This document shows positions 17,077-50,100 of a stretch of 64,000 bases of DNA, one piece after another. The notes below the pieces were generated by a model. The model did not search any database and was not told where the DNA came from. It worked only from the letters and a program-made list of their open reading frames with translations. Source of the DNA: Haliotis rubra (Eukaryota); the NCBI RefSeq assembly GCF_003918875.1, contig NW_025766976.1, positions 868,001 to 932,000 on the forward strand, written 5' to 3'. The stretch's first letter is position 1. Each line of letters starts with the position of its first letter. The position numbers and the translations under genes were made by a program.

Positions 17077-17757
17077 CTTAAGAATAATGAAGTTCTTCAG
17101 TGTGGTGACATTACAGACTGATAAGAAGACGTCAGCATGAAGAAGCAGTACTTCATTTCCATAGAAGAGACCTATGAAGTTGTCAAACGGGGTCACATTG
17201 CGGACGGGACAAAATGGTTCATGAACTGTCCAAGCAAACATAACCATTGAAGCATTGACCCTCTTTAAGAACTTGTGTGTTGAATGCCAGCGAAAGCATA
17301 AGAGAGCCACAACAAAAGGGACCGTAGTAAAGCCAATCATCTCAAAAGACTTTAACTCCAGAGCACAAGTCGATCTTATCGACATGCAATCCATGACTCA
17401 AGGACAGTTCAAAGTCATCATGGTGTATCCAGACCTTCTGACTAAGTTTTGTGTATTGCGGCCCCTGACTTCTGAACGCACAGCAGAAGTGGCATATCAG
17501 CTTCTTGACATCTTCCTCCTCTTAGGTGCCCCATGCGTTCTTCAAAGTGACAATGGATCTGGATTTACTGCCCAGGTTATTTCTGAGCTGAAGATTATGT
17601 GGCCAGCATTGGTGATGGTACATGGAAAACCAAGACACCCCCAAAGTCAAGGTTCTGTAGAAAGGGCAAATTGTGACATCAAGGATATGCTTGTTGCTTG
17701 GATGGGTGATCCAATGATACAAGTGATAATGATACAAGTGATTGGTCTGTGGGACTA

Positions 17758-19104
17758 CACTCTAAACCACAAGTGTTCATACAGAACAGTGGACGCGTCT
17801 GTGCATGTTCTGAATTGGCACACATAGGCCATATTTAGAACAGGCGTGTTCTGTTTTAGAACACACGTGTTCAAAGTCTGTGAGGTAGGTGTTCTAATTT
17901 CAGAACACAATGTGTTGTTAAAAGACTGTGATTTCGTAAATCAAAAGAATAAAATACTTTTTATCATTAACCTGTTAAGATATTTTCAGACTATGTTGAA
18001 CATTACGCAAGGGGACATTTAAAAAAGGTTTAAAGAAATTGTTAATAATTCCTGTATTTTAACTTTAACCTTTTCTTCCCACGGGAGAATACAAATACAT
18101 GTATTTTGAAGAGGAAAATGATTCCTCATATGTTCTAAATAACTGTGTAAAATCTGGATATATATGGTTAACAATTGATAATAACTGAATAAGCAACTTC
18201 TAAAGTAGAGTATCAGACTGACTGACTGAGTTTAGTTTTACGCCGCTTTTAGCAATATTCCAGCAATATCACGGCGGGGGACACCAGAAATGGGCTTAAC
18301 ACATTGTGCCCATGTGGGGAATCGAACCCGGGTCTTCGCCGTGACGAGCCAACGCTGTAACCACTAGGCTACCCCACCGCCCCTAGAGTATCAGAACGCA
18401 TAGTGTCCCTTTACATTTGACAAAATGAACACATTAAGACTGTAACTGTTCTATAAGGTTTGATATGATATCTGTTCGGGCGGCGTGTGTTCTGATTAGA
18501 ACAGCTGATCTCACTTCAAGAGATGTGTCCTCAAAGTATAAACACTTCGTCAGAGAAATGGGAAGTTATCTCATCCTCTCCCGACCCTGACATATAGGAG
18601 CTCTTTTTTCCAGCGTTTTCTTCAATGATGACTTTAACTGCAGATGTAATAAGATGTGCATGAATGAGTTGTTGCAGTTAAAGCTAGCTTATCCTATACT
18701 CCATTTAGCCATCCGCGGTCTAACAAAACGATAATAACAATAATTTCATATTCAATATAGGTGTTAATAAAGTTTTGAATCATTTCATATGGTTGTTGTT
18801 TTTATTCGTTCATGTTTGGCTGGTGGAAGTTTGAGAACACTAGTGTTCTGAAATGAGGATCAGAACACTCAAAGGGGGTTCTAAATCTGTTACAGCATCC
18901 GAGGCCTCCGGGGGTGTTCTGAATTGAACACATACAGAACACACAAAGAGTGTTCTGAAATCTAGAACACGAGCGTTGTGTAAGTGGAACACTAGTGTTC
19001 TGACGGCAGGACACATAGTGTATAAATCAGAACACGCCGACTGCGTTCTAAATCTGTTACAGGAAGGGTGTTCTCACAGAACTAGAACACTTGGGTTTAG
19101 AATG
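17758..19104. mobile_element. Non-autonomous CACT-ended (EnSpm/CMC-like) element nested in the Ginger transposase
   Basis: Termini CACTCTAAACC / GGTTTAGAATG, TA on both sides, many AGAACAC subterminal repeats; removing it restores the frame DWSVGL-KFVQFQK. Confidence 0.75.
18218..18383 (-). mobile_element. tRNA-derived SINE (about 165 bp), nested copy
   Basis: A box TAGCCTAGTGG, B box GGTTCGATTCC, (CAGT)n tail, 12-bp TSD TAGAGTATCAGA. Confidence 0.9.
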
Positions 19105-28717: not shown

Positions 28718-28992
28718 GATCCAAAAGTGCATATGAAAAAATTAAATTCTGATCCTCTTTTCAGGATGCAATCAGGTCAATGTTTAACTTTTGACGATAT
28801 AAAAAAACATATCCCAATTACGTAGATCAATGCTCATGCTGTTGATCACTGGATTGTCTGGTCCAGACTCCATAATTTACAGACTGCCGCCATATAGCTG
28901 GAATATTGCTGAGTGCGGCATTAAGCAACAAACCAACCAATCATTGTAAGGAAGTGTATAACCACATTTAGATATGTATTATTGTTTTGCAG

Positions 28993-29375
28993 AGCACATT
29001 TTTCCACTGAATTAGCAGATAACAAGCTAGTACGTCTAATCTTCAATGGACAAGACATGCGCAATGACCGGAACACCCTACAGGGCTACAACATCACTGA
29101 CAACAGTGTAGTACACTGTCTGGTCACTCAGAACCTTCAGCAGACAGCCCAGCCTCAGATGGACAACGGGGGATGGGGATGCAGCCATTGGCTCCTTCAT
29201 GCTGCCTCTCTTTGCCCTGATACTGGCTTGCATCTGGTACCTGCGTATCACACAGAAGCAATACTTCAATGCTGTGTCCACTCTCTCTCTGGCAGGAGTG
29301 ACGTTTCTCTTTCTTCTAGCCTGTGCTTCAGTGTGGCGGGGAGGTGGGGACAGAGAGCATCAACACATGGATTAG
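28993..29375 (+). CDS. TMUB1: TMUB1/2-like last coding exon (rest of UBL domain and two C-terminal TM helices); apparent +1 frameshift at 29168-29172
   Basis: ttttgcAG acceptor in matching phase; VRLIFNGQ..ITDNSVVHCLV UBL motif. Removing one G from the G5 run gives GDGDAAIGSFMLPLFALILACIWYLRITQKQYFNAVSTLSLAGVTFLFLLACASVWRGGGDREHQHMD-stop, the expected TMUB C-terminus. Confidence 0.88.
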
Positions 29376-30605
29376 ATCCAATAGTGTCAACCCTTACCCT
29401 GGCAGTGGCAAAATGTCTCTCCTTATGGCATTCAAAGGGAGATAACTGTATACAAGTGATTCTTTACTGCACTCGAAAATACTGATATATGTTTCAAGTT
29501 GAAAGTGAGCAGAATGATTAATCAATTTTAGAAATGTTCCAGTTTCATTTCTATTTCAAGTCTCATTGAAATCTGTTTTAAGTGATTGATAATGTTGTCC
29601 TATCATTTGAAAACAACAATATGAAAAACAATAGAAACAAATGATGACTTCAGCTAAGGGACCGTTCATAATTCCGGCCAGGGGGTGATGATGATTTTTA
29701 TGGAAAATCATGTACAATGTGAATAACCACCCCTGAAATTTATGTACAAAGTAAGTGACCCCAAAATTAGGTTGCATAGTCAAGGATTCTATTTTCTTCT
29801 TTATACAATTTATAGTATTACAGTATGGCACTTTGTCATTGAATAATGAAGGAAAACATCTGATGCGAATGAAAGTCTGTGTCCATATTAATTTAAACAA
29901 TAAAGGTAATCACAAAACCTTCATATATGTTCTTTACACAATATACCGGTTCTCAGAAAAATATTACACAATGTATCGTTTGAAAATTGTATTGCGATAT
30001 ACCGATGTGCTGGTAATACTGCAGTCCTATGTTTCACTCTTTACTTAACAATGTTTATTCCTGGTTTTCTTCCAGATATAATAAACTTGTTTTTCAAAAA
30101 GATTGGAAAAACTGAAAACGTTTTTCTCTAACCTAAACACATTTTTAGTAGTCTGCTTTTATCTTTAATAATTTGATGGATGAAAGAATGTATTTGAATC
30201 ATACTGTGCTGGCTGCATTTTGAATATGGCATTAAATTACTTTCATATACTACACAGTGATGTTTTGGGAAACCTTTTGTTGCATTATTCCAAGTGGGGT
30301 AAATGTGTTTGTAAACAGCTAACACTAGTAACAGCTGTATGATACTAACCTCAGCTGAGCACAACTGTATACAGTGAGACCTTGTTTATCCAGACAGTTC
30401 CATTCAGAGGGGCATCAACTGGATTGACAATTTCTGGATTACTTTCTCTGTTCTTAATACCATTCTTATTGGGTAAAAATGTACTTTTTGAAATTTGTAA
30501 TTTAAGAATGTAATATTTGAGATATCCCATTTTCTCTATGGTCAGATTTAAGTCCTTCTCTATCATAGTTTTCATGCTGAAATATATCCTGTACTCCTAA
30601 TCTAA

Positions 30606-30988: not shown

Positions 30989-33045
30989 TGACGATTTAGG
31001 ATGATAGTAATTCTCTTAGCATAGCATACACTTAAACCAGGTACTGGGCTAACATTTTGTCTCTCTTTTCCTGAACCTTATTATTACTGGTGTTTGCTCC
31101 TACCTAGCACCTTCTTTCATGCAAAAGCCCCATATGAAGCTAGCATATATTTTCCTCAGGTTCAGGTTCTGAACTTCAATCTCTCTGGGGCTCATTTTGA
31201 ATTTCAATCAAAATTATATATTTTCACAACTTTTTGTCTGCAGTGCTAGGATCCTGGAAGATTGTGAGATGACTTGATTGAGGGACACATGGCAGATATT
31301 CTGGTGCATACAAATATCAGTTTGTGGTCTATGGTTAAGCTTTCAAACCTTTCATGTATATCCTTCTTTGAGGGGCATTCTTTCATTTATTGTTCAAGCA
31401 AACTGTTTAGGGGCTTATGTACTGGTTGACTTCAACAAATTTCTATCAAAATATGCATCAGAAAATATGTGTCATATTTTGCCCCTTTTTAATCTGTGTG
31501 AAGTTGTGTGAAAGATACTGAGTTCCTGAGGCAAGGGAGGTAACTGACTAACATCCAGGTGATCCTGGACCATAGCAGCCAGTAAAACTGTTAACTCCCT
31601 TGCCTTGGAAGATGTATAGATGTTGCCTAAATTTTCAAGCATGAATTTTTTAATTCCAGTTGATATTAGATCAGTTGGGTTATCAATATAATGTGGTTTT
31701 GGTTGTTTCACTATTTATACTATCACCCCAAAACTCCACCTTCTTGACCTTAGATGTGGGAAATAGAAAGTCCATCCTGAACAAAACTCTGGTCAGCATC
31801 ACAAAAATATTTTCAGTCTTTTCTGTCATTTCTTGATGATCCTTGAATGAAAGCAACGTCACTGAGGTAAAAAGGGCTATGCAGTAGTATTTTAATCTGT
31901 TTGCAGTGTTCCCATGTATCTATGGCAACGGTAACTATAGCAACGGCAGTTTTGAGATGGTGCATGAATACATTGAACATTGTGTAACCAGACATAATAA
32001 TCTGTGTATGATATTGTTGTATAAATGTAAGATTTTGTGTATATTTATCTGGAGCTTGTTGGTTGTCCATCAAGTAATGCCTTGTTAAGAAATAACACGG
32101 ACCCTTAAATTATGTCTTGTTTCAGAGACAATTGGTTATGCTCCAAGGTGGCATAAACTGATTTTCATTTACTAGCTGAACCCATCATTTAAATATACAT
32201 ATTTGTTGACATGCTACTGTTGTTTTGTTTTTTTCTTTGGGCCAGTGTTATTGTATTATAATCATACATGCTCGTAGTTCACCGTCAGAGATCTGCCTTA
32301 CGTCTCCGTCTCCACACACACACACACACCACCCCTAGCTGTTACTGTGAGTGAGTGAGTGAGTGAGTTCGGTTTTACATTGCTCTAAGAAATATCTCAG
32401 CAGTATCACGATGGGAGACACCAGAAATGGGCTTCACATATTTTACCCATGCTGGGGAATCTAACTCGGGTCTTCCGCGTGATGAGCGAACGCTTTAACC
32501 ACTAGGCTACCCCACCGCTTTAACCACTAGGCTACCCCACCGCTTTAACCACTAGGCTACCCCACCGCCCCCTGATACTGTGGTATAACTTGAAAGTTGT
32601 TGAAAGCAACATTTAATCCATCTCATATACTCCCATTTTCTCAAAATATGTAAATTATTTAATAAGAACTCTGTGAAGTGATTGCTGTAGATTGATTTAT
32701 ATATAAGAATTTATACAGTTAAACTTTTGGAGGTGCAGCTGTTCCATAAACGCAAACGTAAATTATTACTTAAGTAAATCCGTTCCTATAAAATCGGGTG
32801 CTGATTGCGACCGTAAGGCGTACCAGATTCCTTTGATGGTGTGATCCCAAACTTGACGTGATTATATTGTTGGCTTGTTGGAACAATACACATGCGCGTG
32901 GTTAACAGCATTGTAACCATGCTAGACTGAAGTTGCCATTTTGGTCTAAGTAAAGTGCTTTGCGTCTAGTATGATTTGGAAATAAATAACAGGAACCCGT
33001 TTCAACGATGCTGAAGTTTACTGGAGATAGCCCATGTCACGTGGT

Positions 33046-33147
33046 CTAAACTCTCTTGGCTCCCTTCTTCCTGTGGAGCCTGGCGACCTTGGCCTTCTTC
33101 CTGTGGACTCTGATTGGCTGCCGGAGATGGAGCTTGGATCTGTGGCC
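33046..33147 (-). CDS. Precursor A exon 3 (GHRSKLHLRQPIRVHRKKAKVARLHRKKGAKRV-stop)
   Basis: cttctcgtttgcccAG acceptor conserved in the paralog; the phase-0 join gives a 105-aa precursor; internal 30-nt repeat. The frame assumes no extra small exon. Confidence 0.7.
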   Translation of the reverse strand, partial: GHRSKLHLRQPIRVHRKKAKVARLHRKKGAKRV

Positions 33148-34143
33148 CTGGGCAAACGAGAAGTGAAGTCTTCATATCAAATCAGGTAAAATTTGTTAAG
33201 TTATAAAACATAACACTAGTTCCTTTAAACATTGCAACTCATGCTTTTAGATTTTGATACGAGTTCCGAATAGATTTACCTTAGTTAAATGTAACTCACC
33301 TTATTTATCTATAGAAACGGAGATAAATGTTGGAATATTAAGATAAACACGCAGAGAAAGCATCTTTTCTCGCCGCTTTTAACAAAATTAAAGTAACATC
33401 AAGAAATGATCTTCACACATTGTTCACATGTGGGGATCAGGGTCTTTGGTTTGACTACTGAACGCTTTAACCACTTGGTTGTCCTTCCTCTTATAAAGAC
33501 ATGCGGAGGTATATGGGCAGGTTTAGTTTAGTTGTCCATTGTATTTTGACATGAAAACATCAATGAAGACATGGCTTCCGATCCCCCTATTATTATACAC
33601 TCCCAGTTATGATAATTGGGTAAGAACGTATATAGTGAGTAGCAATATTCTAGCAATATGGCAACGGGTGACTGCAGAAAGGTGCTTGAAACATTGAATC
33701 TCATAATGTCTACCCCACCATCCCAAGAACATCGGACACTCTTCCTATCCCCTCACTATGTATCCTTGGATAGAACCAGAATATCCATGATTTAGAATGT
33801 ACAACACTACAGCTTGTTCAGCTTGACCTGAGCTACTCTACATATGCATGACCCAGGAGGTCAAATGGCACAAACGGCAGGTCGAGTTAACCTCATTAAA
33901 TAGGGGAGTAGAGAATGTTAACGGCGACCTCGTCTCGGCTGTTCGGACATGTTGACAATGAACTTCACAATAATAGACCCACCCAGTTTTGACACGGTCA
34001 CGCAAAGCATTAGTATTCACTTGATCAGGTCAAACTAAACAAACAAATAGCAAATTTTGATTTCTCTGGGTGACTGGTTTAACCCCAGGAGTTGATCTCA
34101 GTGGTATGTGGATGATTCTGTCAGCAGAGAAGTACGCCTTGTA

Positions 34144-35023
34144 TACTGTAAGCCATTAAAAACGCAATTGGTATTTGTTGTCCTGAAACTCACAAAAGTT
34201 CTATTGAAGATTTTTGCCTGCGATACAGAGGATGTAGGGATAAAAGGCTGTTATTCTGGCCCAGTTCGAGTCCCGGAGCATTCCTCTCACATGAACTTTG
34301 ATACTTAAAACTGAATCTTTGACATTTCTCGTAAACACAACCACATTCATGAAACACGTTGTGCACATGCATTACCTGCACCCAGTCCCTGTAAAAGCAC
34401 AAGGAATTGTGGAACTCTATCACTTTGAGAAAATGCCACACTTGACACAAGACGAAAGGAATCAGGTTATCGGTATGGTCACCGAGGTGCTTCAGATGTG
34501 ATGATTGCCAGGCACTTTAATGTGCATCCATCCACTGTAAGTCGACTCAGACAACGTTTTCGGGCTACCGGAAGTGTTGCTGATCGTCCGCGACCTGGTG
34601 CACCACCTGTGATAACAGCTCGACAAAACCGCAATATCCGAGTTTCACACTTGCGAAATCGGTTCCAAACAGCTGATGATGAGGCAAGGAGGACAATTGG
34701 GACAAGTCAACGTCATTTCAGCGCCCAAAAGGTGCAAGGACGCCTTGCTGCCTTCAACATCCGGTGTCGTCACCCGTACCGTGGTCCAACCTTATTGCAT
34801 CGCCACAGACTTGCCAGACAGCGATGGGCAGCAAATGGGGCCAATCTTGGCAACAGCAAGACGTTGTTGAGTCACTGATGTTGTTGTTGACTGGACATTT
34901 TCAGATGAAATTATTCACAGATGTTCACTTAAAACATATCTGCCAGTTAGGTTTATATATGTTGAAATTGGTGTGAGTAAAGAAAGTATGAATGTCAAAT
35001 TGCGTTTTTAATGGCTTACAGTA
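34144..35023 (+). mobile_element. Internally deleted Tc1/mariner element in intron 2 of precursor gene A
   Basis: TIR TACTGTAAGCCATTAAAAACGCAATT at both ends; paired-like HTH IARHFNVHPSTVSRL, DRPRPGAP (ORF 34498..34878); catalytic domain missing. Confidence 0.88.
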
Positions 35024-35097
35024 TACAAGGCGTACTTCTCTGCTGACAGAATGTCTGTAGTTGTTTTTAGTAAGGAGAAACTCAACGTTTTACAAAC

Positions 35098-35270
35098 CTT
35101 CTTGCCAGCAAGGTACTTTGAAAAATGCTTTGCAATAGATCTTTTTCCAACTGTGCCTCCACCTGTGGGCAAGTCGCCCACGCAGACACATTGCTCCTTT
35201 CCGATGGGGCCTACACACACTCCCTTAGTTGGTGGGCATATCGAACAGTCACAGGCAAGAGCAGAGAACT
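35098..35270 (-). CDS. Precursor A exon 2 (EFSALA/CDCSICPPTKGVCVGPIGKEQCVCVGDLPTGGGTV-GKR-SIAKHFSKYLAGKK)
   Basis: Strong acceptor ttctttttttacAG; 173 nt, phase 1 to 0; GTTTGT donor; ALA signal-peptidase site; 6 Cys; GKR site; indels versus the paralog preserve frame. Confidence 0.85.
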
Positions 35271-36249
35271 CTGTAAAAAAAGAAAATGGCCTCTGGTTAA
35301 CTGATATTCTGATATGAATCCTTACATAATGGTGAGCATTTGCATGTCATATACATGCTTATTACCCATATGGGAAGGAGGACACAGGGTAGTATTTTTC
35401 CTGTAAGTCCCGAGGGAGGTTCGCTTTTTTCTGAACGTTGATTGGCTGTTTCAGAAAATAAAACAGCCAATCAACGCGTATCCCCATATCCATGGGGGGT
35501 TTACTCCCATAACGCAGACCTCCAAAACGCAGACCTCGCAAAATGCAGATACAAAAAGCACACTAATTAATTGGGCCATGCTGGTCATCCCTAATTAATG
35601 AATGGCCCGGTCCACTCCCCTTCCAAAAGGGATTACCGCTATGTTAAGTCACTCAGTAATAGTGCACAACAACAACATTGTCTGAAAACACTGCTCCATT
35701 CTTTAATCTGCTTTTGATACATTTGATGAGTAGAAGCTGTGTTTAGAGGATCAGATAGTTCGACTCCTCCAACGAATCTTATTCAAACATTCAAACCTTA
35801 AAACAATCAACTAACTTCTCCTATGTATAGATTGACATTGCTGTGAGGAAGATTGTGACTGATGAACTAAAAATGATTGTGGGGAAGGTTGTGACTGATG
35901 AAGTAAGAATGATTGTTGTGAGGAAGATTGTGACTGATGAAATGTCGTATAGTGTATAAATGAAATTTCACTTGTAACAACTTTTAAATATTATTGATTA
36001 AATAAATATTGATGAAAGAAAGGAGCACTTGTTACATTGCCAAAGCTCGTTACATGGGTGATACCATTTTTCTTAATCAAGGGTACAGCCTACTAATCCC
36101 AGATGCAACCAACCATAACAAGTGTTGTTTTAACGGGTCTGCGTTTTGGGAGGCTTCCATATGGGGATTCCCAACATCGCGGGTTTCCTTTTTTGCTGTT
36201 TTCATTTTAGCGTTTTTTAAGATCGAAAACTGATATGGGTAATAAACAC

Positions 36250-37004
36250 AACAAGAAGACGAAGTCATCAATATCCCCCGCAACGGCAAAATACTCTTTA
36301 TGAATATGTCTACTAGTTATGATTATGTCAAATGTTTTGGAGTGTATATAGCAAAGTGGAAGGAGAGTATTGAAAGGTTTTTTAAGATCTGCTCCAGAAA
36401 GGAACACTACCACCAAATTCAGTTGAAGCCTAACTTGTTGCCATGGAAATGCACCAAGATGACATCCTCATAGTCACAGCCTAAGTCACGTTTCCACGAA
36501 ACCGCTAAAAATAGAATTCGTATCTGGGTCTAACCATCAAATGGCACATCTATAGACCATGTTTGATATGTGTACCAAGTTTGATATAGCTAGCATGTAT
36601 AGTTTAGGAGATCTGCTCCTAAAAGATGACATCCTCATAGCCACAGCCTAAGTCACGTTTCCATGGAAACCGCAAAAAATATAATTCATATCTGGGTCTA
36701 AACCCCAAAAGGCACATCTATGGATCATGCTTGACATATGTACCAGGTTTGATGAAGCTAGTATGTATAGTTTGGAAGATGTGCTCCGGTCAAGATGATA
36801 TCCTCATAGTCACAGCCTTAAGTCATGCTTCCATTGAAACCGCAAAAAATAAAATACATATCTGGGTCTAAGTTTGGTTAAGTTATCACGAATTGTTTAG
36901 GCGATATGCTTCGGACAAAGTATGACGGACGCACGCACGGAAGCACGGACGGACGGAACTCGTTTCTATATCCCCCGCAACTACCAACTCGTGACGGAGA
37001 ATAA
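36250..37004 (+). mobile_element. Helentron-associated (HINE / pearl-like) non-autonomous element
   Basis: AACAAG start, TATCCCCCGCAAC repeated near both ends, about 165-bp tandem core repeats, (GACG/GCAC)n microsatellite before the 3-prime end. Confidence 0.7.
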
Positions 37005-37559
37005 CACATTATCCTTCCCTCGTTATATTACTTATGTAATTCTCTTGCCAAGGCTCGAGAATTACGCAATTAATATAACTGGGGAAAGATAATCTGTCAT
37101 TCCCCGTCACTCGTTAGTTATTGTCTAAATGTCCAGCGTTTAATTCACAATTCATATATTCGTGGAGTTTTACGCCGCTTTTGACAGTATTCCAGTGAAA
37201 TCACAGCATGTGGAAGGATAGCCCTAAGTGATGCAGGTCTCAGAAGCTCAAAACTTTGGTGAAACCCACAAGCACGGACACGATATCTGGTGTTGACAAA
37301 CTTAGAAACGTAAACTGGTTCGGACCCACAACCATGGGCTTCTGGAGTAGCCAGGAGACGCAGCTCTCCACAGCAAAATGTGGTACCTTTGACGACCAGA
37401 CCACGTGTGTCCATCTTATTATTGGAGTCGGTCATGACAAATATGCCATGGAAAAGTACACAATCTGTTTCCTGATAACTCACAGCATATTATCACATGC
37501 AACTTCATACAACACATAAACTGTAAAATATCGATGATTCGGATGTTCTTTAACTTCAT

Positions 37560-37780
37560 TTGAGGAGCTACTTAAGGAAGCCGTTGGAGCGTTGTCTCAA
37601 TACCGAGTGTAACGTCCACGTAACTCTCCTCCTCATGCCCCCTGTCAGTCTCCTGATCCTCTGGAGGGGCAGTCTACGCCATTCCTCATGTAAAGCAGCT
37701 TCCAATTGGGTCAGGTTCTGTACAGGAGGATCCCTTTGTTGCACACTACGACCGATCATGTCCAAGATATGCTCCAAAGG
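37560..37780 (-). mobile_element. Tc1 transposase C-terminal fragment
   Basis: EHILDMIGR..PVQNLTQLEAALHEEW..I..L..GMRRR (ORF 37568..37777). Confidence 0.8.
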
Positions 37781-38159
37781 TTAAGTGAGTGACTTTAGTT
37801 TTACGCCGCACTTGGCAATATTCCAGCTATATGGCAGTAACTGATCGAGTCTGGACCAGACAATCCAACAGCATGAACATCGATCTACGCAACAGGGATA
37901 CGATGACGTGTCAACCCAGTCAGCGAGCCTGACCACTCGATCGCGTTAGTCGCCGCTTACGACAAGCATTGGTTGCTGAAGATCAATTCTAACCCGGACC
38001 TTCACGGGTTAAGATAAGGGCTCATTCAATCGTGAGATATGTCAGGGGATGAGTTCCTTTGGTATTTGTCAATGATCCTATATGTTGATCCTGCACAGTA
38101 GCTGCAAACTAATTATGTAAGCTTTTAGGTGTAGAACAAGTGAAAAAAGCAAAACGTAC

Positions 38160-38202
38160 CTGCTATTATAAGCACAAGACAGAGGAGAACGAGACACTTC
38201 AT
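38160..38202 (-). CDS. Secreted Cys-rich/cationic peptide precursor A, exon 1 (signal peptide MKCLVLLCLVLIIA)
   Basis: Consensus Kozak gccgccATG; hydrophobic core; GTACGT donor in phase 1; conserved in the paralog at 46557-46599. Confidence 0.85.
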
Positions 38203-38708
38203 GGCGGCACAATGCACAGGTGTGTGACGTGTGTTTGTTCTTGTACAAGTCCGGATTTAAGATAGCCAACTGCAAGCCCACTGATATGCCATGCCACAGT
38301 CTGGTACCACGTGGTCCTGTAGGTGGTGGGCGAATACGTTCCAGAGATTTCGTAAGAATGCGGAAAGACGGATGAGGTGTGTTTGCACTAACACTGAACT
38401 ATCTTATGAAACTAGTACCCCGTGGTCCTGTAGGTGGTGGCCAAGAGTTTTAAAAATTACAGTCACATCCGCAACTTCACCCGTATCGTGTCGGCACAAT
38501 ATACAGCTCTGTTGTGTGTGTTTGCGACGACACTGAACTATCTTATCAAAGTGGAACCATTTAGACCTGTAGAGTGATAGAGTTAAAATTTATCGTCACA
38601 TCGGCAGTATTTGAGCCATATCGTGACGAGAGAACCTTATACAGCAATAAACAAGTATGAAATATATTTAAAGGTTATAAAATCCTGTCGCCAAAGGACA
38701 GTACAACA

Positions 38709-39238
38709 ACTATAGTCTGTTTGCAGTGAAAACTTACCGATGTATTTCACTTTAAACAAAAAAGTAAATCAAATTAAGGGAAATTAAGATTGCGAATCCT
38801 CATAATTTTACCTTGCCAAATGAACATTTAAATCTCAGAAGTTTATTCAACTTAGGATAAAAGTTGTTTAACAAACGATCATAGATTCAAATCGCTATTA
38901 TTGGTTTGTATTACAAGGGGATAAGCGCAGTAGATGGAACAGTGAAACAAATGCACGTGCTGTACGTGATGAGCGTTAACTTAGACCAGCCCTACTTGTT
39001 CTCGGTGTTTCATCTAATGTGCATACCCCCTTGTAATACAAACCAATAATAGCGATTTGAAACTATGATCGTTTGTTAAACAACTTTTATCCTAAGTTGA
39101 ATAAAATTCTGAGATTTAAATGTTCAATTGGCAAGGTAAAATTATGAGGATTTGCAATCTTAATTTCGCTTTAATCGATTTACTTTTTTGTTTACAATGA
39201 AATTCACCGGTACGTTTTCACTGCAAATAGACTATAGT
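38709..39238. repeat. About 530-bp fold-back element upstream of precursor gene A
   Basis: About 210-bp near-perfect inverted arms (38709-38920 / 39026-39238). Confidence 0.85.
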
Positions 39239-40591
39239 ACATCACATTTTATTTAAAACTAGTTAGGGAGCATATAAAATAGTAAACTGTTAAGTGACAA
39301 CACAATATAGAAATAGGGTATAGATCGACAACAATTGAAGGTCAATTACCACGACGAGGGACCATGTTAGGCCTGTACATAGTGGGCGAGGGTTTTATCA
39401 TGACTATGAACACTCACTGCCATTTAGTACTCAAATGTTTTGAATTGGAATAGAAGTAACTGTTCTCGCTATTGGGCCAATCATTTTCGCCCGTTGGCGA
39501 GATATTTTAATAGCGCCAAGAAATAAGTTTAAATAAGTTATAAGCATACTTTCATTCATTTACAACCCCCAAAACATGAATTATGGGCAAAAATAGACCC
39601 ATGGGCGAGGTAGTATAAATTTTACGTTTTCGAAGGAATGTAGTGTTTTTCATCCTTATCATATATTCATTGTAACTGCGTGTTGGATTTTGTCAAATCC
39701 TTTTTAAGAAATTAGCCACAGTGCGGAGAGTTTCTGGATGTTTGGTTTTTCAGTATGAAATTGTGACGTGTTGACGGTATAGGCGGGACAAAAAAGACCA
39801 ACATACAAGAGACTATAGGGACTTTCGGGATCGGGGATGGAAACAACTGCTGACAGAAATATATAATTAGAATTATTTGCAGTGAAGCCAGTGATGTAAA
39901 CGGTGAAATCAACAAGATCAAGTCCCCTATATTCGTGTAAAATAGATAACGGCATAAATTGTGATAAACATCGATGCATTGTAGTAAAACAGCGTGAACC
40001 CAACTGCTTAAAACTGGTCAGAACTGAATTGCGTTATCTATGGCCAACTTGAGAAAGTATTTGGTTTAGACAGGTGTTCCTTACTGTTTGTTACACTGTG
40101 CATTCTTCCGTTTGATAAAACAAGGAGGAATGTACAAAGGAATGCTTGTCCCGGCTGGAACAGACATGCAGCCGCAATTGCTTCAAAACAGGTAAGCGCA
40201 GGTATTGACGCTGCTACACATGATTGGCAACAAGAAGATTAGTGTGGAATTTCAATCTTTACCATGCTCATCTTTTTGTAGGTGTTCCTGAGTCGCTGTT
40301 CAATATCAGCAAATGACATATTTGCTATTTTGGCTCAGGGGCAATCAGTTCCAATGACGACCTTATAGAGGAACCAAAACGATATTAAACAACATATCTA
40401 TGACGTAGGTATAATGACCCTCGGACTGAAGACACCTTTGAAAACGGTGGACGAGGAAAGGACATGACAGGCTGAAAATCTTCAAGACATGGCTCACACC
40501 AACAAAAAACATTCTCGTGTCTCCAGACACTTCACATGAATGTCGGCCTCTTGAAACAAATGTCGAAGGTATTGTTAAAGATTGATATGTA

Positions 40592-42050
40592 TACCAGCCA
40601 CATAAAGAAACTGTGCATTGTCAAAATATTATCCGAGTTGATAAGTACGATAACAATGTCAAAGGTACATATAAACCTTAATGGAGGGATCATGAGACCA
40701 TAACAAGTCGGGAGAATTTCAACTGAAAAGTCAATCACAATGACGTCACGAGTCCACAAGCGGGACAAGGGTCAAACGACCATGTCACAAGCTCAATAAC
40801 GGGTATGTCCACCATCGGCATTGAGAACAGCAGTGCATCGACGACGCATAGAGCCTATCAAACGTGCAAGGAAGGCTTGTGGGATGTCACGCCAAGTTCT
40901 GTTGCAAGGTCAAGGACGTTATCTGGCGGATGAGGAAGACGGCGTAGACGTCGATCCATCTCGTCCCAAACATAAGTCAACGTTTAGGTGTTGCACGAAA
41001 TCCATAGAAACCCTTGCCGTATGAGGGCGGGCATTGTCCTGTTGGAATGTTAACCCAGGGCCATGACGTTGCAGAAAAGGAATTGCCACAGGTTGAAGAA
41101 TCTGATCCCTGCAGCCCACACCAGTTAAGTTGCCCTGAACAATCACCAAAGGAGTTCTTTGGCGTGCTGTTATTCCACCCCAAATCATCACGGAACCACC
41201 ACCCAAGCGATTCCTCTCCAAGACACAGGCCTGTGCATAACGTTCTCCCACGCGTCTATAGGCACGTTGACGTCCATCACTATCGGAAATGTTAAACCTG
41301 GACTCATCTGTAAAAACAACATTTCTCCACCAAAACAAGGGTCTGGGGACATGATTTCGGCACCACATTCGGCGAGCTTGTCGATGACGTTGTGTCAGGA
41401 TAGGCCGTATGGCGGGCCGTCGTGGTCTGATCCCGTGATGACGTAAACGTTGTCGAACTGTGTTGGGGTGGATACGGCGAAGTCCTGGGATGGTTCGGGC
41501 AGTCATCACTGCAGTCTGAAACCTGTGGCGCAGATGGGTCACCCTTATCCATCTGTCCTGTCTTGGCGTTGTTACACGTGGACGTCCAGAACGTGGCCGA
41601 TCGATGACGTCATTTGTGTTCTGGTAGCGTCTCACCAGTGCAGAAATGGTGTTCCGGTGGCAGTGGAAATGTGCAGCCACTTGTCGTTGAGACATTCCCC
41701 CACGGACCATGCCAATGGCCTCATGACGATGTGCAGACGTGGGCCTTGGCATGCTATGCGTTTAAATAGCCGTTTAATTTTTTGAACGAGCGCAAGGGCA
41801 GGGGTTGACCTTTCCAAAGTGACAGTATTGTGTGGCATTCATTTGCTCTGTTTCTCTTTCCCGGAATGCACGTGCAACAACGTATTGCACGTCTCAAGGA
41901 CGAACCCACTGACGTCACAGAACATGGCACGTGCATGCATGTTGGATACATGTCACTAATCTCTGAGTTTAAATCCTTATGTGTCTACACAGGTTTGATA
42001 AATTTAGATTTAAATTTTTTTGTATGCACAGTTTCTGTATGTGCCTAGTA
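40592..42050 (-). mobile_element. Near full-length Tc1/mariner transposon with a small deletion in the catalytic domain
   Basis: TA-flanked TIRs (TACCAGCCACATAAAGAAACTGTGCA / TACTAGGCACATACAGAAACTGTGCA); ORF 40919..41752 with VFTDESRF and FQQDNARPH; the WP..SPDLNPIE motif is missing, and the frameshifted C-terminus ends GGHTRY-stop at 40793. Confidence 0.92.
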
Positions 42051-42968
42051 TATATCAGAATGTATGAAATACGTTTTGACCTGGTGGAGGTATAACACTT
42101 TGCATGATCTCACCGTTCCACATCGCTTTAAACAAACATGTCGAGGTTATTGTTGCAGATTGATTTATATATGTATATCAGAATTTATGAAATGCGTCTT
42201 GACCTTGTGGGGGTATAACACTTTGCATGAAACAAACAAACCGATGTACAGCGGTGAGATTCATGCAACGTGTGCACACGGATTTTGCGTTTATACTTCC
42301 ATATACGCTAAAGACAATTACACTAAGTTCGTAAGTAAATCCTACCCGTAAGATCCGGATTAGAATTGGTCTTCAGCAACCCATGCTTGTCGTAACATGA
42401 GATTGACGGATCGGGTGGTCAGACTCGATGACTTGGTTGACACATGTCATCGGTTCCCAATTGCGTAGATCGATGCTCGTGATGCTGATCACTGGATTGT
42501 CTGGTCGATACTCAATTATTCACCCACTCACTCACTCACTCAGCAGCAACACACCACTGGTCCAGACTCGATTATTTACAGACCGTAGCCATATAGCTAG
42601 CGTCGAACAACAAACTAACCAACCAACTTAAGTAAATCCCAAACTTGACGTGATTATATTTTTGGCTTGTTGGAACAATATACACATGCGCGTGGTAAAC
42701 ATCATTGTATCCATGCTAGACTGAAGTTGCCATTTTGGTCTAAGTAAAGCGCTTTGCGTCTTTTATGATTGGGATTTAGCTTAGGACACCGGAAATGGGT
42801 TTCACACACAGAACCCATGTCGGGAATCGAACACGGGTCTTCGGTGTGACGGGCGAATACTTTAATCACTAGGCTAACCCACCACCCCGCACGCACAAGC
42901 AAAATACTTTGGTTCTTTTATGATTGGTAACAAATAACAGAAACACTTTTCATCGATGCTGAAGTTTA

Positions 42969-43124
42969 CTAGAGATCGTCCATGTCACGTGGTCTAAACT
43001 CTCTTGGCTCCCTTCTTCCTGTGGAGCCTGGCGACCTTGGCCTTTTCCTGTGGAGATTTGTGGGCTTGACCTTCTTCCTGTTGACTCGGAGTGGCTGCCG
43101 GAGATGGGGCTTGGACCCGTGGCC
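42969..43124 (-). CDS. Precursor B exon 3 (GHGSKPHLRQPLRVNRKKVKPTNLHRK..., 1-nt deletion relative to paralog A near 43043-43046)
   Basis: tttcttgtttgcccAG acceptor; three 30-nt repeat units, one of which is 29 nt, so the read-out ends RPRSPGSTGRREPREFRPRDMDDL-stop (119-aa precursor as assembled). Confidence 0.65.
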   Translation of the reverse strand, partial: GHGSKPHLRQPLRVNRKKVKPTNLHRKRPRSPGSTGRREPREFRPRDMDDL

Positions 43125-44200
43125 CTGGGCAAACAAGAAACTGTCGTAGTTACGTCTTCATATCAAATCAGGAAAACATTGTTTTGTTGTAAACAATAAA
43201 ACCAGTAATTTGAAGCTCATCATGCTTTTAGATTTTGATATGAGTTCCGAATAGATTTACCTTAGTTAAATGTAGCTCACCTTATTACTGGAAACGGAGA
43301 TAAATGTTGGAATATTGAGATAAGAAATGTTCAAATCAAGCAGAGTAAATAATATTGTTTTACGCCGCTTTTAGCAAACTTCCAGTAACATCAAGGCTGG
43401 GGCGACCAGAAATGATTGTTCACATGTAGGGATCAGGGTCCTTGGTTTGACTACTGAACGATTCAACCACCTGGATGTCCTACCACATAAACAGACATGC
43501 AGAGGTATGGGCAGGATGTACGTAGGTTTTCCATTGTATCTTGGCTTGACAATATCAATGAAGCGATTGTTTTCGTTCCCCATGTTATAATATACACTTC
43601 CCGGTAATGACAATTGTGTGAGAACATATAGTGAGTGAGTATGTTTTTACGTTGCATTTAGCAAATATTCTAGCAATTTCATGGCGGGTGACTGCAGAAA
43701 TGTGCTCCAAATATTGAAGTCATATATGGGATCAAACCTGGGTCATCGGCGCGTGCTGAACTACTAGGCTAATTCACCTTCCAAGAACTTCGGGCACTGT
43801 TGTAATCCTCTCTTTATGTATTCTTGGCTATAACCAGATTTTTCATAATTTAGAGAGGCGGCAGGGTAGCCAAGTGGCGAAAGCGTCCGCTCGTCACGCT
43901 GAAGACCCAGGTTCGAATCCCTTTACATGGTACAATGCGCCAAGCCCATTCTTGCGTCCCCCGTCGTGATATTGCTTAAATATTGCTAAAAAGCAGCGTA
44001 AAGCTAAAGTCACTCACTCACTCCTAATTCAGTGTGTACAAACAATGGGGAAGTATCAAATTTTGATTTGTCTGTGTCTCTGGTCTAGCCCCAGCCGTTG
44101 ATTTCAAAGTGTTATGTAGATGATTCTGTCAGCAGAGAAAAGTACACTTCATAATCTGTTCATTTGTTTTCAGTTAGGAGAAAAGCAACGTTTCGCAAAC

Positions 44201-44361
44201 CTTTTTGCCAGCTAGATACTTTGAAAGGTGCTTTGCGATAGATCTTACTCCAAGGATCTTATCGTCCACGCAGACACAGAACTTCTGCGACATTCCGCTG
44301 GGGCCTACACACACGCCCCCTGTTGGGCATCCTGAACAGTCACAGGCAAGAGCAGTGAACT
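44201..44361 (-). CDS. Precursor B exon 2 (EFTALA/CDCSGCPTGGVCVGPSGMSQKFCVCVDDKILGVR-SIAKHLSKYLAGKK)
   Basis: ttttcttacAG acceptor, 161 nt, phase 1 to 0, GTTTGC donor; all six Cys are conserved with paralog A. Confidence 0.85.
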
Positions 44362-45027
44362 CTGTAAGAAAATGGCCTCTGGTTAACTAATATTTGCATA
44401 CGAACCCTTCACATAATTTTGAACATATAAGACACTTGCAAGGAGTAAAATTTAATACACCGTTGTTCAGAGCGAATGGAGACCTTTTGCTATGTCATAT
44501 AAATGCATATCCGATGTTCAATTCTTTGGTCACATAACACCACTTTTAACAGTATTGGTGTCAAATCGGGGAATGCTGGAGGAAAGCCCTTTATGATGAA
44601 GGCGGTCACCACGAGGATGGGGAAGATATCTGGTTCTGTCAAATCTATAAACGGAAACTGAATCGAACACACAGTCATAGGCTTCTGGCGTGGCCAAGAG
44701 ACGCAACTCTCCACAGAAGGCGCCTAAGATGACTGAGTCCATCTGTTTCTTGGAGTCGGTCATCACAAATTTACCATGGAAACATACGATCTGTTTCCTG
44801 ACTATACCCATATTTGGTTAACTCTGCATTCAGCAATATTCCAACTATATGGCGTCGGCCTGTAAATAATCGAGTCTGGACCTGACAATCCAGTGATCAA
44901 CATCATGGGCATCGTTCTACGTTACGATGACGTGAGTCAAAGATTACCCATAGTGCATTAGCACATACAACTCGATACATAAACTGTAAACTATCAATGA
45001 ATCGGTGTCCTTTTCACTTCATCCGAG

Positions 45028-45372
45028 GTGATGGTGAGGTGAAATTGGGTTTATCGTCGCGCTGGAGAATATTTCGCTCATATGACGACGTGCATGCGTG
45101 TGTATGTGTATGTGCGCCTGCTTGTACTAGCCCAGACTGAAGCTGGTTTTATAGTGCTACCATGCCGCAGTGAAGCATGAACACCCCATTCAGACACATT
45201 ATACTGACTCCGAGCCGATCAGTCCTTGTTGTACCCATTAATGGCGAGCGCCAGGCAGGGACCAACAAGTACCATATTTTAACGTCTTTTGGTATGACGC
45301 GGTCGGGGATCGAACCCGCGACCTTCCGCTCTCCGGGCGGACGCTCTAACCACTACACCACGGAGGCGGCTC
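45028..45372 (-). mobile_element. Second tRNA-derived SINE family (about 345 bp, V-domain-like middle)
   Basis: A/B boxes GTGGTGTAGTGG / GGTTCGATCCC; 13-bp TSD CACTTCATCCGAG; absent at the matching site of paralog A (near 37555). Confidence 0.8.
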
Positions 45373-45543
45373 CACTTCATCCGAGTAGCATAATGACATA
45401 TATTACGAATATAAAATAATCAGTCCGATAAGCTTCAGGTCACGATCGGGCATTCTAATTATAACACAAGGGGCGATTCACTCAGACGTTATTTTCCCAC
45501 GGCTCTTCTCAAGTTGCTTTGGTGACGTTTTAGCTTTTATCTC

Positions 45544-46063
45544 TAGTCCGTTTGGCTCAAAAGCGGACCGATGAATTGCAATCTAACTCGAAAACTAATA
45601 AACATAAAATACTCAATGAAACACTGATCATAATCAAAACCTCAGACCAACTCTGTGAGGTTTTTGCAGAATTTATGTCCTAAACATACATTAAAATATC
45701 GACACAGTTCACTATTTGTTACGAGGGAGGAGTGCAGAGAAAGGGACAGCCAGGAGCGCGAGAAAGGATGGAGACGGCACAGCACAGGTTAATGAATCAA
45801 TAACGTTGTCGGCACTTGCTTCTCTAACACCTGGCTGTCCCTTTCTCTGCACTCCTACCTCGTTAACAAATAGTGAACCGTGTCAAAATTTTAATGATAG
45901 TTTGTTAAACAACTTTTTTAATTTTAGAACATAAATTCTGCAAACAAATTACAGAGTTGGTCTGATGTTTTGATTATGATCAGCGTTTCATTGAATATTT
46001 TATGTTTATTAGTTTTCGAGTTAGATTGCAATTCATCGGTCCGCTTTTGAGCCAAACGGACTA
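45544..46063. repeat. About 520-bp MITE with long TIRs in intron 1 of precursor gene B
   Basis: TAGTCCGTTTGGCTCAAAAGCGGACCG... arms of more than 100 bp at both ends. Confidence 0.85.
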
Positions 46064-46556
46064 TAATAATGTTTGCATTGTCCATGAGTGTTTCCGTATT
46101 TTAATATACGTCAGCTATTCAAAAGAAACAAACATGTTTTCCACTCGGCAAACCCCTGGCAAAGTTATAATGCAAATTGTATTCCTGTTGCAAAGTTATG
46201 ACACGAAAACACAATCGGTTGAAACTCTCTATATATCATTTCTCCCGTAGCCCTAGTACCAAGGGGTATAATTTGTGCCAAGGAAGGTGCGTCATGGTCT
46301 CTGAAATAAAATAAATTACACCATATCGATTATGGAACCCAAACCTAACCCAACCCTAAACCTAACCCTAACCCGGTAAATATTGAGTTGGCTCAATAGT
46401 GTATGTTTTGTGGTTCCATATGTTGGTCAGTTTCTATCTGGGGTGTTTGACCTGTTGGAGGGCTGCCTCAATGTTGTAGTTTAGGGTTCCTGTATGTTGC
46501 TGCCAGCTGATGATGTGCCGTTTTAGGTGGAGAACAAGTGAAAAGACTAAACGTAC

Positions 46557-46599
46557 CTGCTATTATAAGCACGAGCCCGAGGAGAACGAGACACTTCAT
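46557..46599 (-). CDS. Secreted Cys-rich/cationic peptide precursor B, exon 1 (MKCLVLLGLVLIIA)
   Basis: gccgccATG, GTACGT donor, 43 nt as in paralog A. Confidence 0.85.
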
Positions 46600-47062
46600 G
46601 GCGGCACAATGTACAGGTGTGTGACGTGTGTTTGTCCCGACACTGACCTATCTTATCAAAGTGGAACCAGACCTTTAGATAGTGAGTGAGTACTTTAAAA
46701 GTATGGCCACAACGGCAGGTTTGCACCATATCGTGACTAGTAAATAATTTACAATGAAAATGTATTAAAACCTATCAACTGTAAACACTTCAATAACGAA
46801 CAATGTCCCACATTTTTGAGAAAAAAATATTAGGGAAGATTTTAAGGCATGGATTCAAAAGACCAACATGCCAGAGAATATAGGTACTTACGGTATACGG
46901 GCTTGAGAAAATTGCTGACGAATGGAGACTAAGATAGAATTATTTGCAGTGAACTCAGAGATGTAGCCAGTGAAATTAATGAGATCAATTTTATTGCTTA
47001 TTAGTTGGTGAGTGAATGTAGGTTGAAAACCAAAGAGAATCCCAATATTTGGGTAAAATTCA

Positions 47063-47102
<40 letters not shown>

Positions 47103-50100
47103 GTTATCTCTTATGAAAAGAAATTGAAAAAGTGCAACTAGGCTATTTCGAAATCGGACATTGAATACATTGTCAATGATTAAATACTAACTTGATATAG
47201 CTAACTATAAATAAATCTCAATCTTTTCCATGCTGTGTAATCAATGACCACATTGAGAAAGTATTAAATAAGGACAGGTGTTCGTCACTGTTTGGGGCAG
47301 TGGGGTAGCCTAGTGGTTAAAGCGTTGGTTCGTCACGCCATAGACCCGGGTTCGAATCCCCACATTGGTACGATGTGTGAAGCCCATTTCTGGTGTCCCC
47401 CGCCGTGATGTTGCTGGAATATTGCTAAAAGCGGCGTAAAACCAAACTCAGTCAGTCAGTCATCACTGTCTGTTAATCGGTGCATTCTTCAGTGTGATAA
47501 GTTATTATAGGATATTTATATAGCGCACATATCCATACAATTAGTGCATGTTCAAGGCGCTGGTATTTTTTCCCTCGATCATTGGATGTCAATCTCAGCG
47601 GCACATCGCATTATCAATCTCAACTCCCTGGGGAGTATACAACTCTTGCAGCCACTAGGCGCACCGAGTTATTGTGGCTTTCTCATCCTAACGAGGTACC
47701 CATTCACAGCTGGGTGGACTGGGACACATAGTCACAGTACAAATCACAAATCAAAGGGGAATGTACAAAGACATGCTTTTCCCAACTGGAACCGACCTGA
47801 GTATGCGAATAAGTCAAAATGGGCAACATAAGGAGTATGGACTTTCAACTTTTACCATGCTCCTCTTTTTGGAGGTGTTCCTGAGTCGCTGTTTATTATC
47901 AGCAAATGCCATACGTGCAAGGGACAATTTCTCAACATCAGAAAGGAATGGCTGACGTCAACCTGAGACGTTCTCGTTGATGATGTATCGTCTTCGTGTC
48001 TACAGATAATTCCCGTGACTGTCGGCCTCTTACAACAAATAGTGAACACTTATCCTGGAAAATACATATAGTTACTGTCATTTATTAATTTAACAGATGA
48101 AGATTTCGATATGCCAATGTTACTCATTTTATGTCACGTTATTGATTACAACCAATGAGTGAAAAAGACGACCGTTTAATGCCCATTTCGAGGACTTTCA
48201 AGATAAAAGCAGTCATTGAGTCTATTCATATAGGTGCTATAAACTGCTATAAGGATTGGCTTAAAGTGTAATCAACTACGGCAAAATGTAAAATTAACCT
48301 AAAACAATTTCTTTTGTTCAGATTAAAAGAATTTCCAATTTTAGTGTTATATGGCCAGTTTCGACCACCATCGTGCTATCAGAAACAAACAAATCCAAGT
48401 CATTTCCACCCAAACATGGACCAGCCATTAGAAAACACCAGTTATGAAGACGTACACTGCGCATCTGGAACACATCACACGGATGATGCAGAGCAAACAT
48501 GATAATAAATCTATGGACAATAAGTGAGTGAGTGAGTGAGTATGGCTTTACGCCGCTTTTAGCAATATTCCAGCAATATCACGGCGGGGGACACCAGAAA
48601 TGGGCTTCACACATTGTACCCATGTAGAGAATCGAACCCGGGTCTTCAGCATGTCTACCCCACCGCCCCCTATGGACAATGAAGGATGGAACTACAAAGT
48701 GCCAAGTCATAGTTCAGACAGCACGGATGAACGGCCTAAAACAAAGTCTATTCAAGTACATGTATAGGAAAGTATTTCTTGAGTTATTTCTCGTCGCACA
48801 AAAACACGAAACTGTGTCATCGTACACGAGGTGAATGTTCATAGCTTCCTTTAAGAATATGAATATGTATTTATGGTAATGATTCTTTAAGCAATGACTA
48901 AAATGTTTTCAGTGTCCGGGTTTTGATTTCCAAGTAACTTAGTCACACATACTCACGTTTGTTTCCTTGAACAATTGCAAAGGAATTTATGTATGGATTA
49001 TTACAACTCACACAAATACACTTATTGCAAGTTGCTGCAGGTTTTTATTACAATTCACAAAATAGTTAACTTTATTGCAATTCATTATGAACACTGTAAC
49101 AATGAATGAGTATGGTTTTAATCCGCTTTTAGTAATGTTCCAGCAACATTAAGACGGGGACACCAGAAACCGTTACATATTGTACCTGCGTGGGGAATCG
49201 AACCCGACCCTTCGGCGTGACGAGCGAAAGCTTTACCTTCTTGGCTACCCTCAAGACAGCAACGTCGTAACGAGGTGGGGCGATGGGGTAGCCCAGTGGT
49301 TAAAGCTCCCGCTCGTCACGCCGAAGACCCGGGTTCGATTCCCCACATCGGTACAATGTGTGAAGCCAATTTCTGGTGTTCCCCGCCGTGATATTGCTGG
49401 AATATTTGTAAAAGCGGCGTAAAACCAAACTCACTCACTCACTCATAACGAGGTTGTGTCAACTGACGTGATGGATGGCCGGTAGAGACATTTGTTTTTA
49501 TAAGTTATCACTCTGATGACATCTATTAACAAGTTGCATGGAAATAAGGCAGATTTGGAATTCGAACCAGTTGTTAGCGGATCATGACTCGGCCACGAGT
49601 CACAATTCTTCGCAGCTTAGGTGAAAAAAAGTAATAGAAGTGTAGAAGTGAACCCTTGTGATGACACAGATAAACGCGTACTTTGTTATTGATATTAGGC
49701 TTTCAATGTTACAATCGAACACTTGCTAAGCACCAAGTTAAATCTGTAGTCAGAGGCGTGCTCCTTAGCACATATTGAGTAGTATATATTAATCATTGCA
49801 TAATGAGGCCATTTGCGAAGAGCTGGACACAATGTATGTTCTCAACTGTTAAAAGCTCCCCAGCGAGTTGAAAAGGTAAAATCATTTGTAAATGAGCAAT
49901 GACTTGGGAAAGCTGATTTGAACACGCTAGCATGTTTGGTCATACGCTATGTTGTCAGATATCTAAAGTGTGTAATTTGAATTCTTGTCGTGACGTTGTG
50001 TATGTGTTAGTGATTAGGAAGCACGTGTCTAATGACAGAATATGTTATCTCAGTATGGGAAGTGTGACACATATGACGTCCGTTCTTGTGGTACCCAGTG

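Follow-up and report, generated by a model that had tools for sequence, protein, structure and literature searches.

Two tandem genes and their products

The 64,000-nucleotide (nt) stretch of Haliotis rubra contig NW_025766976.1 analyzed here, hereafter referred to as the window, carries on its minus strand two three-exon genes, designated A and B, which constitute a tandem pair of paralogues from a Haliotis-restricted family. H. rubra is the blacklip abalone, and a mussel origin of the DNA was rejected accordingly. Joining the exons listed in Table 1 yields an open reading frame (ORF) of 318 nt, or 105 amino acids (aa), for gene A and of 360 nt (119 aa) for gene B. All four introns have the form GT...AG with a pyrimidine-rich tract ahead of the AG, exon 1 is 43 nt in length (phase 1) in both genes, and exon 2 ends in phase 0 in both. 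The sequence GCCGCC lies directly 5' of each ATG, in agreement with the consensus Kozak starts of the original prediction, which had been made from the nucleotide sequence alone and had proposed two minus-strand genes of three exons with equal phases. Splicing of these exons reproduces the proteins that were then proposed, and the products are identical, letter for letter, to the RefSeq entries XP_046574907.1 (gene A; isoform X3 of H. rubra LOC124282905) and XP_046574904.1 (gene B; isoform X1), an agreement well beyond chance. As a consequence of this identity, the genes must be regarded as annotated, rather than hidden as had been supposed; RefSeq merely leaves them uncharacterized, treating both genes as a single locus with three isoforms under the name "uncharacterized protein LOC124282905". 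No copies other than A and B were found in the 1.38-Gb H. rubra genome, whether the search was made with the cysteine-bearing exon or with the tail.

Table 1. Coordinates of genes A and B and of the other features of the window
Feature	Position	Strand	Description
Gene A exon 1	38160..38202	-	ATG and 14 signal-peptide codons; donor GT in phase 1; matches the start of XP_046574907.1
Gene A exon 2	35098..35270	-	Rest of signal peptide, 6-Cys domain of the derived type, junction with GKR, first part of basic tail
Gene A exon 3	33046..33147	-	Polycationic tail, two HRKK repeats, stop; one 30-nt repeat unit fewer than B and the orthologues
Gene B exon 1	46557..46599	-	Signal peptide
Gene B exon 2	44201..44361	-	Ancestral-type 6-Cys domain; 161 nt, the same length in all orthologues
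Gene B exon 3 (this assembly)	42969..43124	-	Frame shifts after ...NLHRK and continues to a later stop
1-nt deletion site in B	43043..43046	-	AAAA, versus AAGAA in A and all orthologues
Duplicated segment with gene A	32844..40320	-	Collinear with 42636-47913; introns 72-77% identical
Duplicated segment with gene B	42636..47913	-	Orthologue of the single gene of other species; SINE in 3' untranslated region in common with H. asinina
Ubiquitin-domain exon of syntenic neighbor gene	28982-29485	+	Pfam ubiquitin match; neighbor 414-458 aa in other abalones
Tc1/mariner-type transposase remnant	40919..41752	-	277-aa ORF between A and B, part of neither
Retroelement integrase-core (rve) fragment	17255-17827	+	Just below Pfam cut-off (32.5 vs 32.6 bits)

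Orthologues and selection

At the syntenic site, H. rufescens, H. cracherodii, and H. asinina each possess a single orthologue of 111 aa. In the coding sequences rebuilt for these three genes, the exons measure 43, 161, and 132 nt throughout and are bordered by GT-AG. Each orthologue has a ubiquitin-domain gene for a neighbor, which is carried by the opposite strand and which it precedes on the upstream side, an arrangement that is likewise seen in the window. Since the orthologues are all 111 aa long, the possibility that the exons form part of a larger protein, which had been named at the outset as a potential refutation, can be ruled out.

Ratios of nonsynonymous to synonymous substitution (dN/dS) were estimated by the method of Nei and Gojobori. 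Among the orthologues of the type found in gene B, hereafter B-type, dN/dS is 0.11-0.21 for the Cys domain and 0.35-0.61 for the tail, which changes faster while keeping its composition. Between H. asinina and H. cracherodii, the excess of synonymous changes is significant both over the whole coding sequence (p=6e-6) and over the Cys domain (p=4e-5). This is a real, constrained gene family under purifying selection, and the Cys domain proves to be strongly conserved among orthologues rather than hypervariable. In the comparison of A with B, the tail gives a dN/dS of 0.13 (p=0.001), and the Cys domain with its linker gives 0.70, a value not significantly below 1 (p=0.57), along with three indels.

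Anatomy of the precursors

Each protein is composed of a 20-aa signal peptide, a six-Cys mini-domain of approximately 30 aa, a conserved Arg, and a basic tail of 47-57 aa. In all five proteins, the signal peptide starts with M-K, contains a 12-residue hydrophobic core, and ends in A-L-A directly before Cys21. The hydrophobic core and the small residues at positions -3 and -1 are those of a classical secreted protein, and the signal peptide predicted for A and B is thereby upheld by the A-L-A cleavage motif in both. The six cysteines are spaced C-x-C-x2-C-x5/6-C-x8/10-C-x-C in a module that is nearly invariant in the B-type proteins. The C-x-C and C-x-x-C motifs also brought a metallothionein-like metal cluster into consideration, a reading disfavored by the entry of the protein into the secretory pathway.

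The two modules differ markedly in charge. The Cys domain has a net charge of -1 to +1, which is atypical for a Cys-stabilized cationic antimicrobial peptide and speaks against the proposal that the Cys peptide acts as one. The tail, conversely, carries a charge of +18 to +24, arising from 18-24 Lys and Arg residues, with 5-8 His and no Asp or Glu except for one Glu in H. rufescens; it is built from 10-aa units ending in L-H-R-K-K, three in the B-type proteins and two in A. The succession of a 6-Cys module and an acid-free polycationic tail, as first described, is thus present in A and B.

At the boundary between domain and tail, an Arg is invariant in all proteins, and a Lys occupies P6 in all B-type proteins. 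The triplet G-K-R occurs in A only, and is represented in the B-type proteins by G-V-R, G-P-R, D-G-R, or E-G-R. By the monobasic convertase rule, an Arg with a basic residue at P6 fits a processing site. Convertase cleavage at this conserved residue may set the tail free, at KR in A and at a monobasic R with a P6 Lys in the B-type proteins. The GKR cleavage and amidation signal on which the original prediction relied is, accordingly, present in A but not conserved, the B-type proteins having a single Arg, and the scheme of an amidated Cys peptide with a GKR-released cationic tail fits only paralogue A, without being a conserved design of the family. The same holds for the gamma-core: the G-x-C-x8-C that had been noted is found in A (G-V-C-x8-C), while the B-type proteins have G-V-C-x10-C, outside the usual range of the motif, G-x-C-x(3-9)-C, which is in any case loose and not diagnostic.

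AlphaFold modeled the isolated Cys domain with a mean predicted local distance difference test score (pLDDT) of 75 (85 over the first 20 residues) and with a beta-hairpin formed by residues 10-13 and 22-25; the predicted form of the domain is thus a disulfide-braced beta-hairpin. The full-length model scores poorly (pLDDT 54). It places a single short helix where the tail begins and leaves the remainder of this low-confidence tail unstructured. Over the first 11-12 residues of the tail, Ile, Phe, Tyr, Leu, and Ala would lie on one face of this helix.

Search for relatives

No Pfam family matched the exon pieces or the full proteins at E values up to 10. A profile of exon 2, run with HMMER against 1.84 billion representatives of 15 billion proteins, found no relative outside Haliotis. 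Searches of 5.8 billion proteins returned only Haliotis proteins for the full-length sequence, and only the four Haliotis clusters for the family profile. The sole non-Haliotis match, to a bacterial GSDH/PA14 protein (P0007), was dismissed, as its alignment includes no cysteine. A sequence-profile search of the PDB gave no match, VIA-align gave none at Z ≥ 2, and in the ESM Atlas the feature search was empty and the shape search yielded nothing significant. Foldseek, run against the PDB with both models, likewise gave no significant match; the top rows were all EGF-like hairpins (E ≥ 4.5).

Among the sequences searched, the family is thus confined to Haliotis. The view that the six-Cys framework lies outside known families is sustained by the Pfam, PDB, 15-billion-protein HMMER, and fold searches, all of which were without a match. 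What appears to be previously undescribed is therefore the cysteine framework, the genes themselves having already been annotated.

History of the duplicate pair

The synonymous divergence (dS) between A and B is 0.27, approximately that between H. rubra B and its orthologues in H. asinina or H. rufescens. Gene B and the H. asinina orthologue share 84% protein identity, an exon 2 of 161 nt, and the insertion of a short interspersed nuclear element (SINE) in the 3' untranslated region (UTR). These comparisons identify B as the ancestral type and the orthologue of the single gene in other species, and A as the derived copy, in which the Cys domain has been remodeled and the tail retained. The three indels in the Cys domain of A include one insertion of five residues. 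The tail of A has lost exactly one 30-nt (10-aa) repeat, and what remains is tightly conserved relative to B.

Downstream of its intact gene, H. asinina possesses a decayed A-type copy (locus L005, 14537-14873 and 14944-18448), with a spoiled signal peptide in exon 1 and a frameshift in exon 3; its exon 2 was not detectable at the locus. Because H. asinina holds this second copy, the duplication must be older than the split between H. rubra and H. asinina. On the 5' side of the decayed copy is a 103-nt tandem repeat (3.3 copies, 96% matches), which duplicates the promoter-proximal region and the 5' UTR. H. rufescens and H. cracherodii show a single copy of the gene in a region that includes 10 kb to either side of it.

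The two H. rubra genes also differ upstream of their coding regions. In gene A, approximately 250 nt (38238-38486) have been inserted about 40 nt upstream of the ATG, displacing a promoter block that consists of a TATA-like box and the GATA-rich TGATAAGATAG and that is conserved in B and all orthologues. The proximal promoter common to A and B is thus limited to the ~40 nt directly upstream of the ATG of A.

A further block, of approximately 47-60 nt, is nearly invariant, synonymous sites included (33032-33078 in A, 42980-43026 in B, and about 18354-18448 in L005). It takes in the final HRKK repeat and the stop codon, together with ~20 nt at the beginning of the 3' UTR, where the palindrome CACGTG lies. 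All six copies, which come from four species, retain it, even the pseudogene of H. asinina (93.7% identical to A), although dS elsewhere is 0.3-0.8. Gene conversion or an element acting at the RNA or DNA level are possible explanations.

The gene B frameshift and isoform X2

Relative to A and all orthologues, the third exon of B in this assembly lacks a single nucleotide. Beyond this deletion, B read in its ancestral frame does not differ from A by a single nucleotide as far as its TAG stop at 42994-42996 and on into the 3' UTR, and a genome search with the tail independently matched B in a second frame. Owing to the deletion, the last 24 codons of B, which give the protein an acidic ending, are an out-of-frame read-through; the divergent C-terminus that the original prediction ascribed to B is consequently a frameshift product.

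The third RefSeq isoform, X2 (P0003), is 111 aa in length, and joins exons 1-3 of B to the end of exon 3 of A, which gives it an intact, A-like tail. Its sole possible junction lies in a 10-nt stretch common to A and B, TCCACAGGAA (43041-43052; 33090-33101), into which no GT-AG, GC-AG, or AT-AC pair fits, and a canonical splice was therefore rejected as its source. Isoform X2 probably serves to circumvent the nucleotide missing from B. It may reflect an undeleted B allele or transcript, or else protein-guided modeling, and the deletion itself may be allelic or an assembly error.

Sequencing runs and other elements of the window

Sequencing runs X1-X3, which were guessed to be RNA, and X5 were mapped to positions 32500-38450 (5951 letters), and thus to gene A only. 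Run X5 behaves as DNA at approximately 57x, and covers the exons of gene A at a divergence of a few per cent. Against exon 3 it has two substitutions, which, as read from their positions, are one synonymous and one Arg to Lys. Within intron 2 of gene A (34145-35049), an X5 contig joins 34144 to 35050 and skips about 905 bp of repeat-rich sequence, which must therefore be absent in another haplotype or individual.

Two segments, 32500-32571 and 37784-38009, are very high-copy repeats, for which the word depth of the DNA run sums to millions. Since their loose ends resemble a tRNA T-arm (GATTCGAACCCGGG), these are probably tRNA-derived SINEs; ARAGORN found no intact tRNA within the window. In the transposase remnant located between the two genes, HTH_Tnp_Tc3_2 exceeds the Pfam cut-off, which DDE_3 narrowly misses (24.8 vs 28.6 bits).

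Comparison with known systems

The arrangement of the Haliotis precursors recalls that of the cathelicidins, in which a signal peptide and a conserved disulfide module likewise precede a faster-evolving cationic C-terminal segment that follows a basic, cleavage-like site. However, the cathelin domain (PF00666), with its four conserved cysteines, is lacking; the module comprises about 30 aa and six cysteines, and has no Pfam match. The likeness is best viewed as one in the logic of the layout, and not as homology. Similarly, the penaeidins, arasins, and hyastatin combine a linear cationic region and a small disulfide domain in one secreted chain, and such chimeric crustacean antimicrobial peptides, composed of a linear Pro/Arg-rich and a Cys-rich domain, may act uncleaved. 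In these peptides, though, the order of the domains is reversed and the Cys framework is another one, and the Haliotis tail is rich in Lys, Arg, and His rather than in Pro and Arg. No similarity to them in sequence or fold was detected by HMMER, the PDB profile search, Foldseek, or VIA-align.

Within the molluscs, the small secreted Cys-rich peptides of the mussel mytilin and myticin type and the defensins of the CS-alpha-beta (cysteine-stabilized alpha-beta) class resemble the Haliotis family in having precursors of three parts. In those precursors, it is the Cys peptide that acts as the cationic effector, followed by an acidic extension at the C-terminus. The charges are inverted in Haliotis, where a roughly neutral Cys domain is followed by a basic tail. 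Assignment to the CS-alpha-beta defensins finds no backing, as the C-x3-C...C-x-C pattern is absent, the model contains a hairpin only and no alpha-helix in the domain that could be pinned to a beta-sheet, and Pfam gave no match. The molluscidins, among them hdMolluscidin of Haliotis discus and cgMolluscidin, are linear antibacterial peptides with dibasic KK/KR repeats (PMC11767717), whose precursors have neither a signal peptide nor a pro-region (PMC5577615). Molluscidins also have no Cys domain. The Haliotis family possesses both a signal peptide and a 6-Cys domain, and is set apart here by comparison with the descriptions of molluscidins only.

Some resemblance to EGF-like domains was also seen. 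In the B-type proteins, C-x10-C-x-C reproduces the spacing from Cys3 to Cys5 of EGF, and the domain borders on a basic stretch, which recalls heparin-binding EGF-type factors. The top Foldseek rows were the uPA amino-terminal fragment, EGF, factor Xa, and Notch, all with E ≥ 4.5 and a probability below 0.1. Neither Pfam nor VIA-align gave an EGF match, and the PROSITE EGF signatures are absent because no further Cys follows 8-14 residues after the final C-x-C. This modeled hairpin resemblance is therefore a lead, and not a match.

Possible functions of the family

The reading that we tentatively favor is that the family represents a secreted, Haliotis-only protein that would act through its polycationic tail on polyanionic targets, with host defense as its preferred setting. 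As a secreted protein it would work outside the cell, where the tail could bind polyanionic targets electrostatically. The likeliest of these would be microbial envelopes, which would place the protein in host defense. The conserved Cys domain might then serve as a folded carrier or pro-domain, from which a convertase would free the tail at the conserved Arg. A more elaborate scheme, drawn by analogy and decidedly unlikely, is that of a de novo cathelicidin-like precursor of two modules, in which the uncharged six-Cys fold would chaperone a His-rich polycationic repeat peptide and release it at the conserved Arg, and in which, within the H. rubra lineage, the carrier of gene A would become a second, amidated bioactive peptide.

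Several observations weigh against a role in host defense exerted by a released tail. Among orthologues, the Cys domain is conserved more strongly than the tail, an order unusual for an arms-race effector, and the hydrophobic moment of the proposed tail helix is modest, at about 0.3. The tail is dense in RKK and [RK]-x-x-R sites, and hence may not survive as a single peptide. Furthermore, at least one copy must be dispensable, as B is frameshifted here and the A-type copy of H. asinina has decayed. Runs X1-X3 showed zero depth over all three exons of gene A, with reads over intronic high-copy repeats only and no spliced joint, and the search of sequencing runs revealed no run recorded as RNA that contained the stretch. 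The sequence strings of the family and the locus and protein identifiers were also absent from the 8.4 million full texts searched. Look-ups of the exact proteins for transcript contigs returned NCBI genome records only. The data of runs X1-X3 and X5 are compatible with transcription as well as with its absence, and the presence of several Gnomon isoforms at one locus usually implies transcript support.

The basic character of the tail would equally suit an uncleaved structural or adhesive protein, anchored by its Cys domain, whose tail would cross-link the sulfated polysaccharides of mucus or matrix, or meet shell mineral or acidic matrix. We consider this rather unlikely. The composition and repeats of the tail, with Cardin-Weintraub-like X-B-B-B-B-X runs, suit generic polyanion binding; it is the composition of the tail that is conserved, and not its sequence; and the dibasic junction site is not conserved. 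Many proteins of mollusc mantle and mucus secretomes are, moreover, lineage-restricted and basic. Yet the invariant boundary Arg, with its P6 Lys, resembles a processing site, and the family strings are absent from the text supplements of the H. laevigata nacre and prismatic shell proteome (a weak negative, the sequence of the H. laevigata orthologue not being known) and from those of the H. asinina mantle secretome (also weak). Processing is, conversely, central to the idea of a multi-peptide prohormone, which we hold to be quite improbable. Here, cleavage by convertases at GKK and at every RKK would yield several short peptides, among them a Cys-rich co-peptide, heptapeptides with L-H at their end, and an 11-mer, amidated, from S-I-A-K-H-x-S-K-Y-L-A-G-KK. 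The di- and tribasic sites do lie at conserved positions, the short helix of H. rubra and H. asinina has G-KK directly behind it, and A has its GKR. However, H. rufescens and H. cracherodii read G-H-K-K, which leaves the G ahead of KK unconserved, and the peptides between the sites vary from species to species (tail dN/dS 0.35-0.6), although it is the bioactive neuropeptides that are usually conserved. Nor did the family strings occur in the transcriptome and peptidome supplements for H. discus hannai ganglia, and the searches found no relative beyond the one genus.

It is also conceivable, although very unlikely, that one or both of the H. rubra copies are decaying, B being a frameshifted pseudogene and A a relaxed duplicate with its promoter displaced by the ~250-nt insert. 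Consistent with this are the 1-nt deletion in B, the three indels and the dN/dS of 0.70 (p=0.57) in the Cys domain of A, the restriction of the conserved proximal promoter of A to ~40 nt, the A-type pseudogene of H. asinina, and the lack of RNA both in runs X1-X3 over the exons of gene A and in the run records. But A retains an intact ORF, six cysteines, its splice sites, and its Kozak context, and its tail is under purifying selection relative to B (dN/dS 0.13, p=0.001). In addition, the intact B-type tail of RefSeq X2 suggests undeleted B transcripts or alleles, or an assembly error.

Abalones are farmed, and suffer from Vibrio and herpesvirus disease. To our knowledge, few gene-encoded defense or secreted effector peptides have been described from them. 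The pair in H. rubra illustrates how paralogues of this family have diverged: the orthologues keep the Cys domain and vary the tail, whereas the H. rubra duplicate A does the reverse. Different copies have, furthermore, been damaged in different species, the A-type copy having decayed in H. asinina and B being frameshifted in the H. rubra assembly. Molluscs have many orphan secreted genes, and this family is for now one more of them; with an apparently undescribed Cys framework joined to an extreme cationic tail, both of which can be synthesized, it offers a concrete and cheaply testable candidate.

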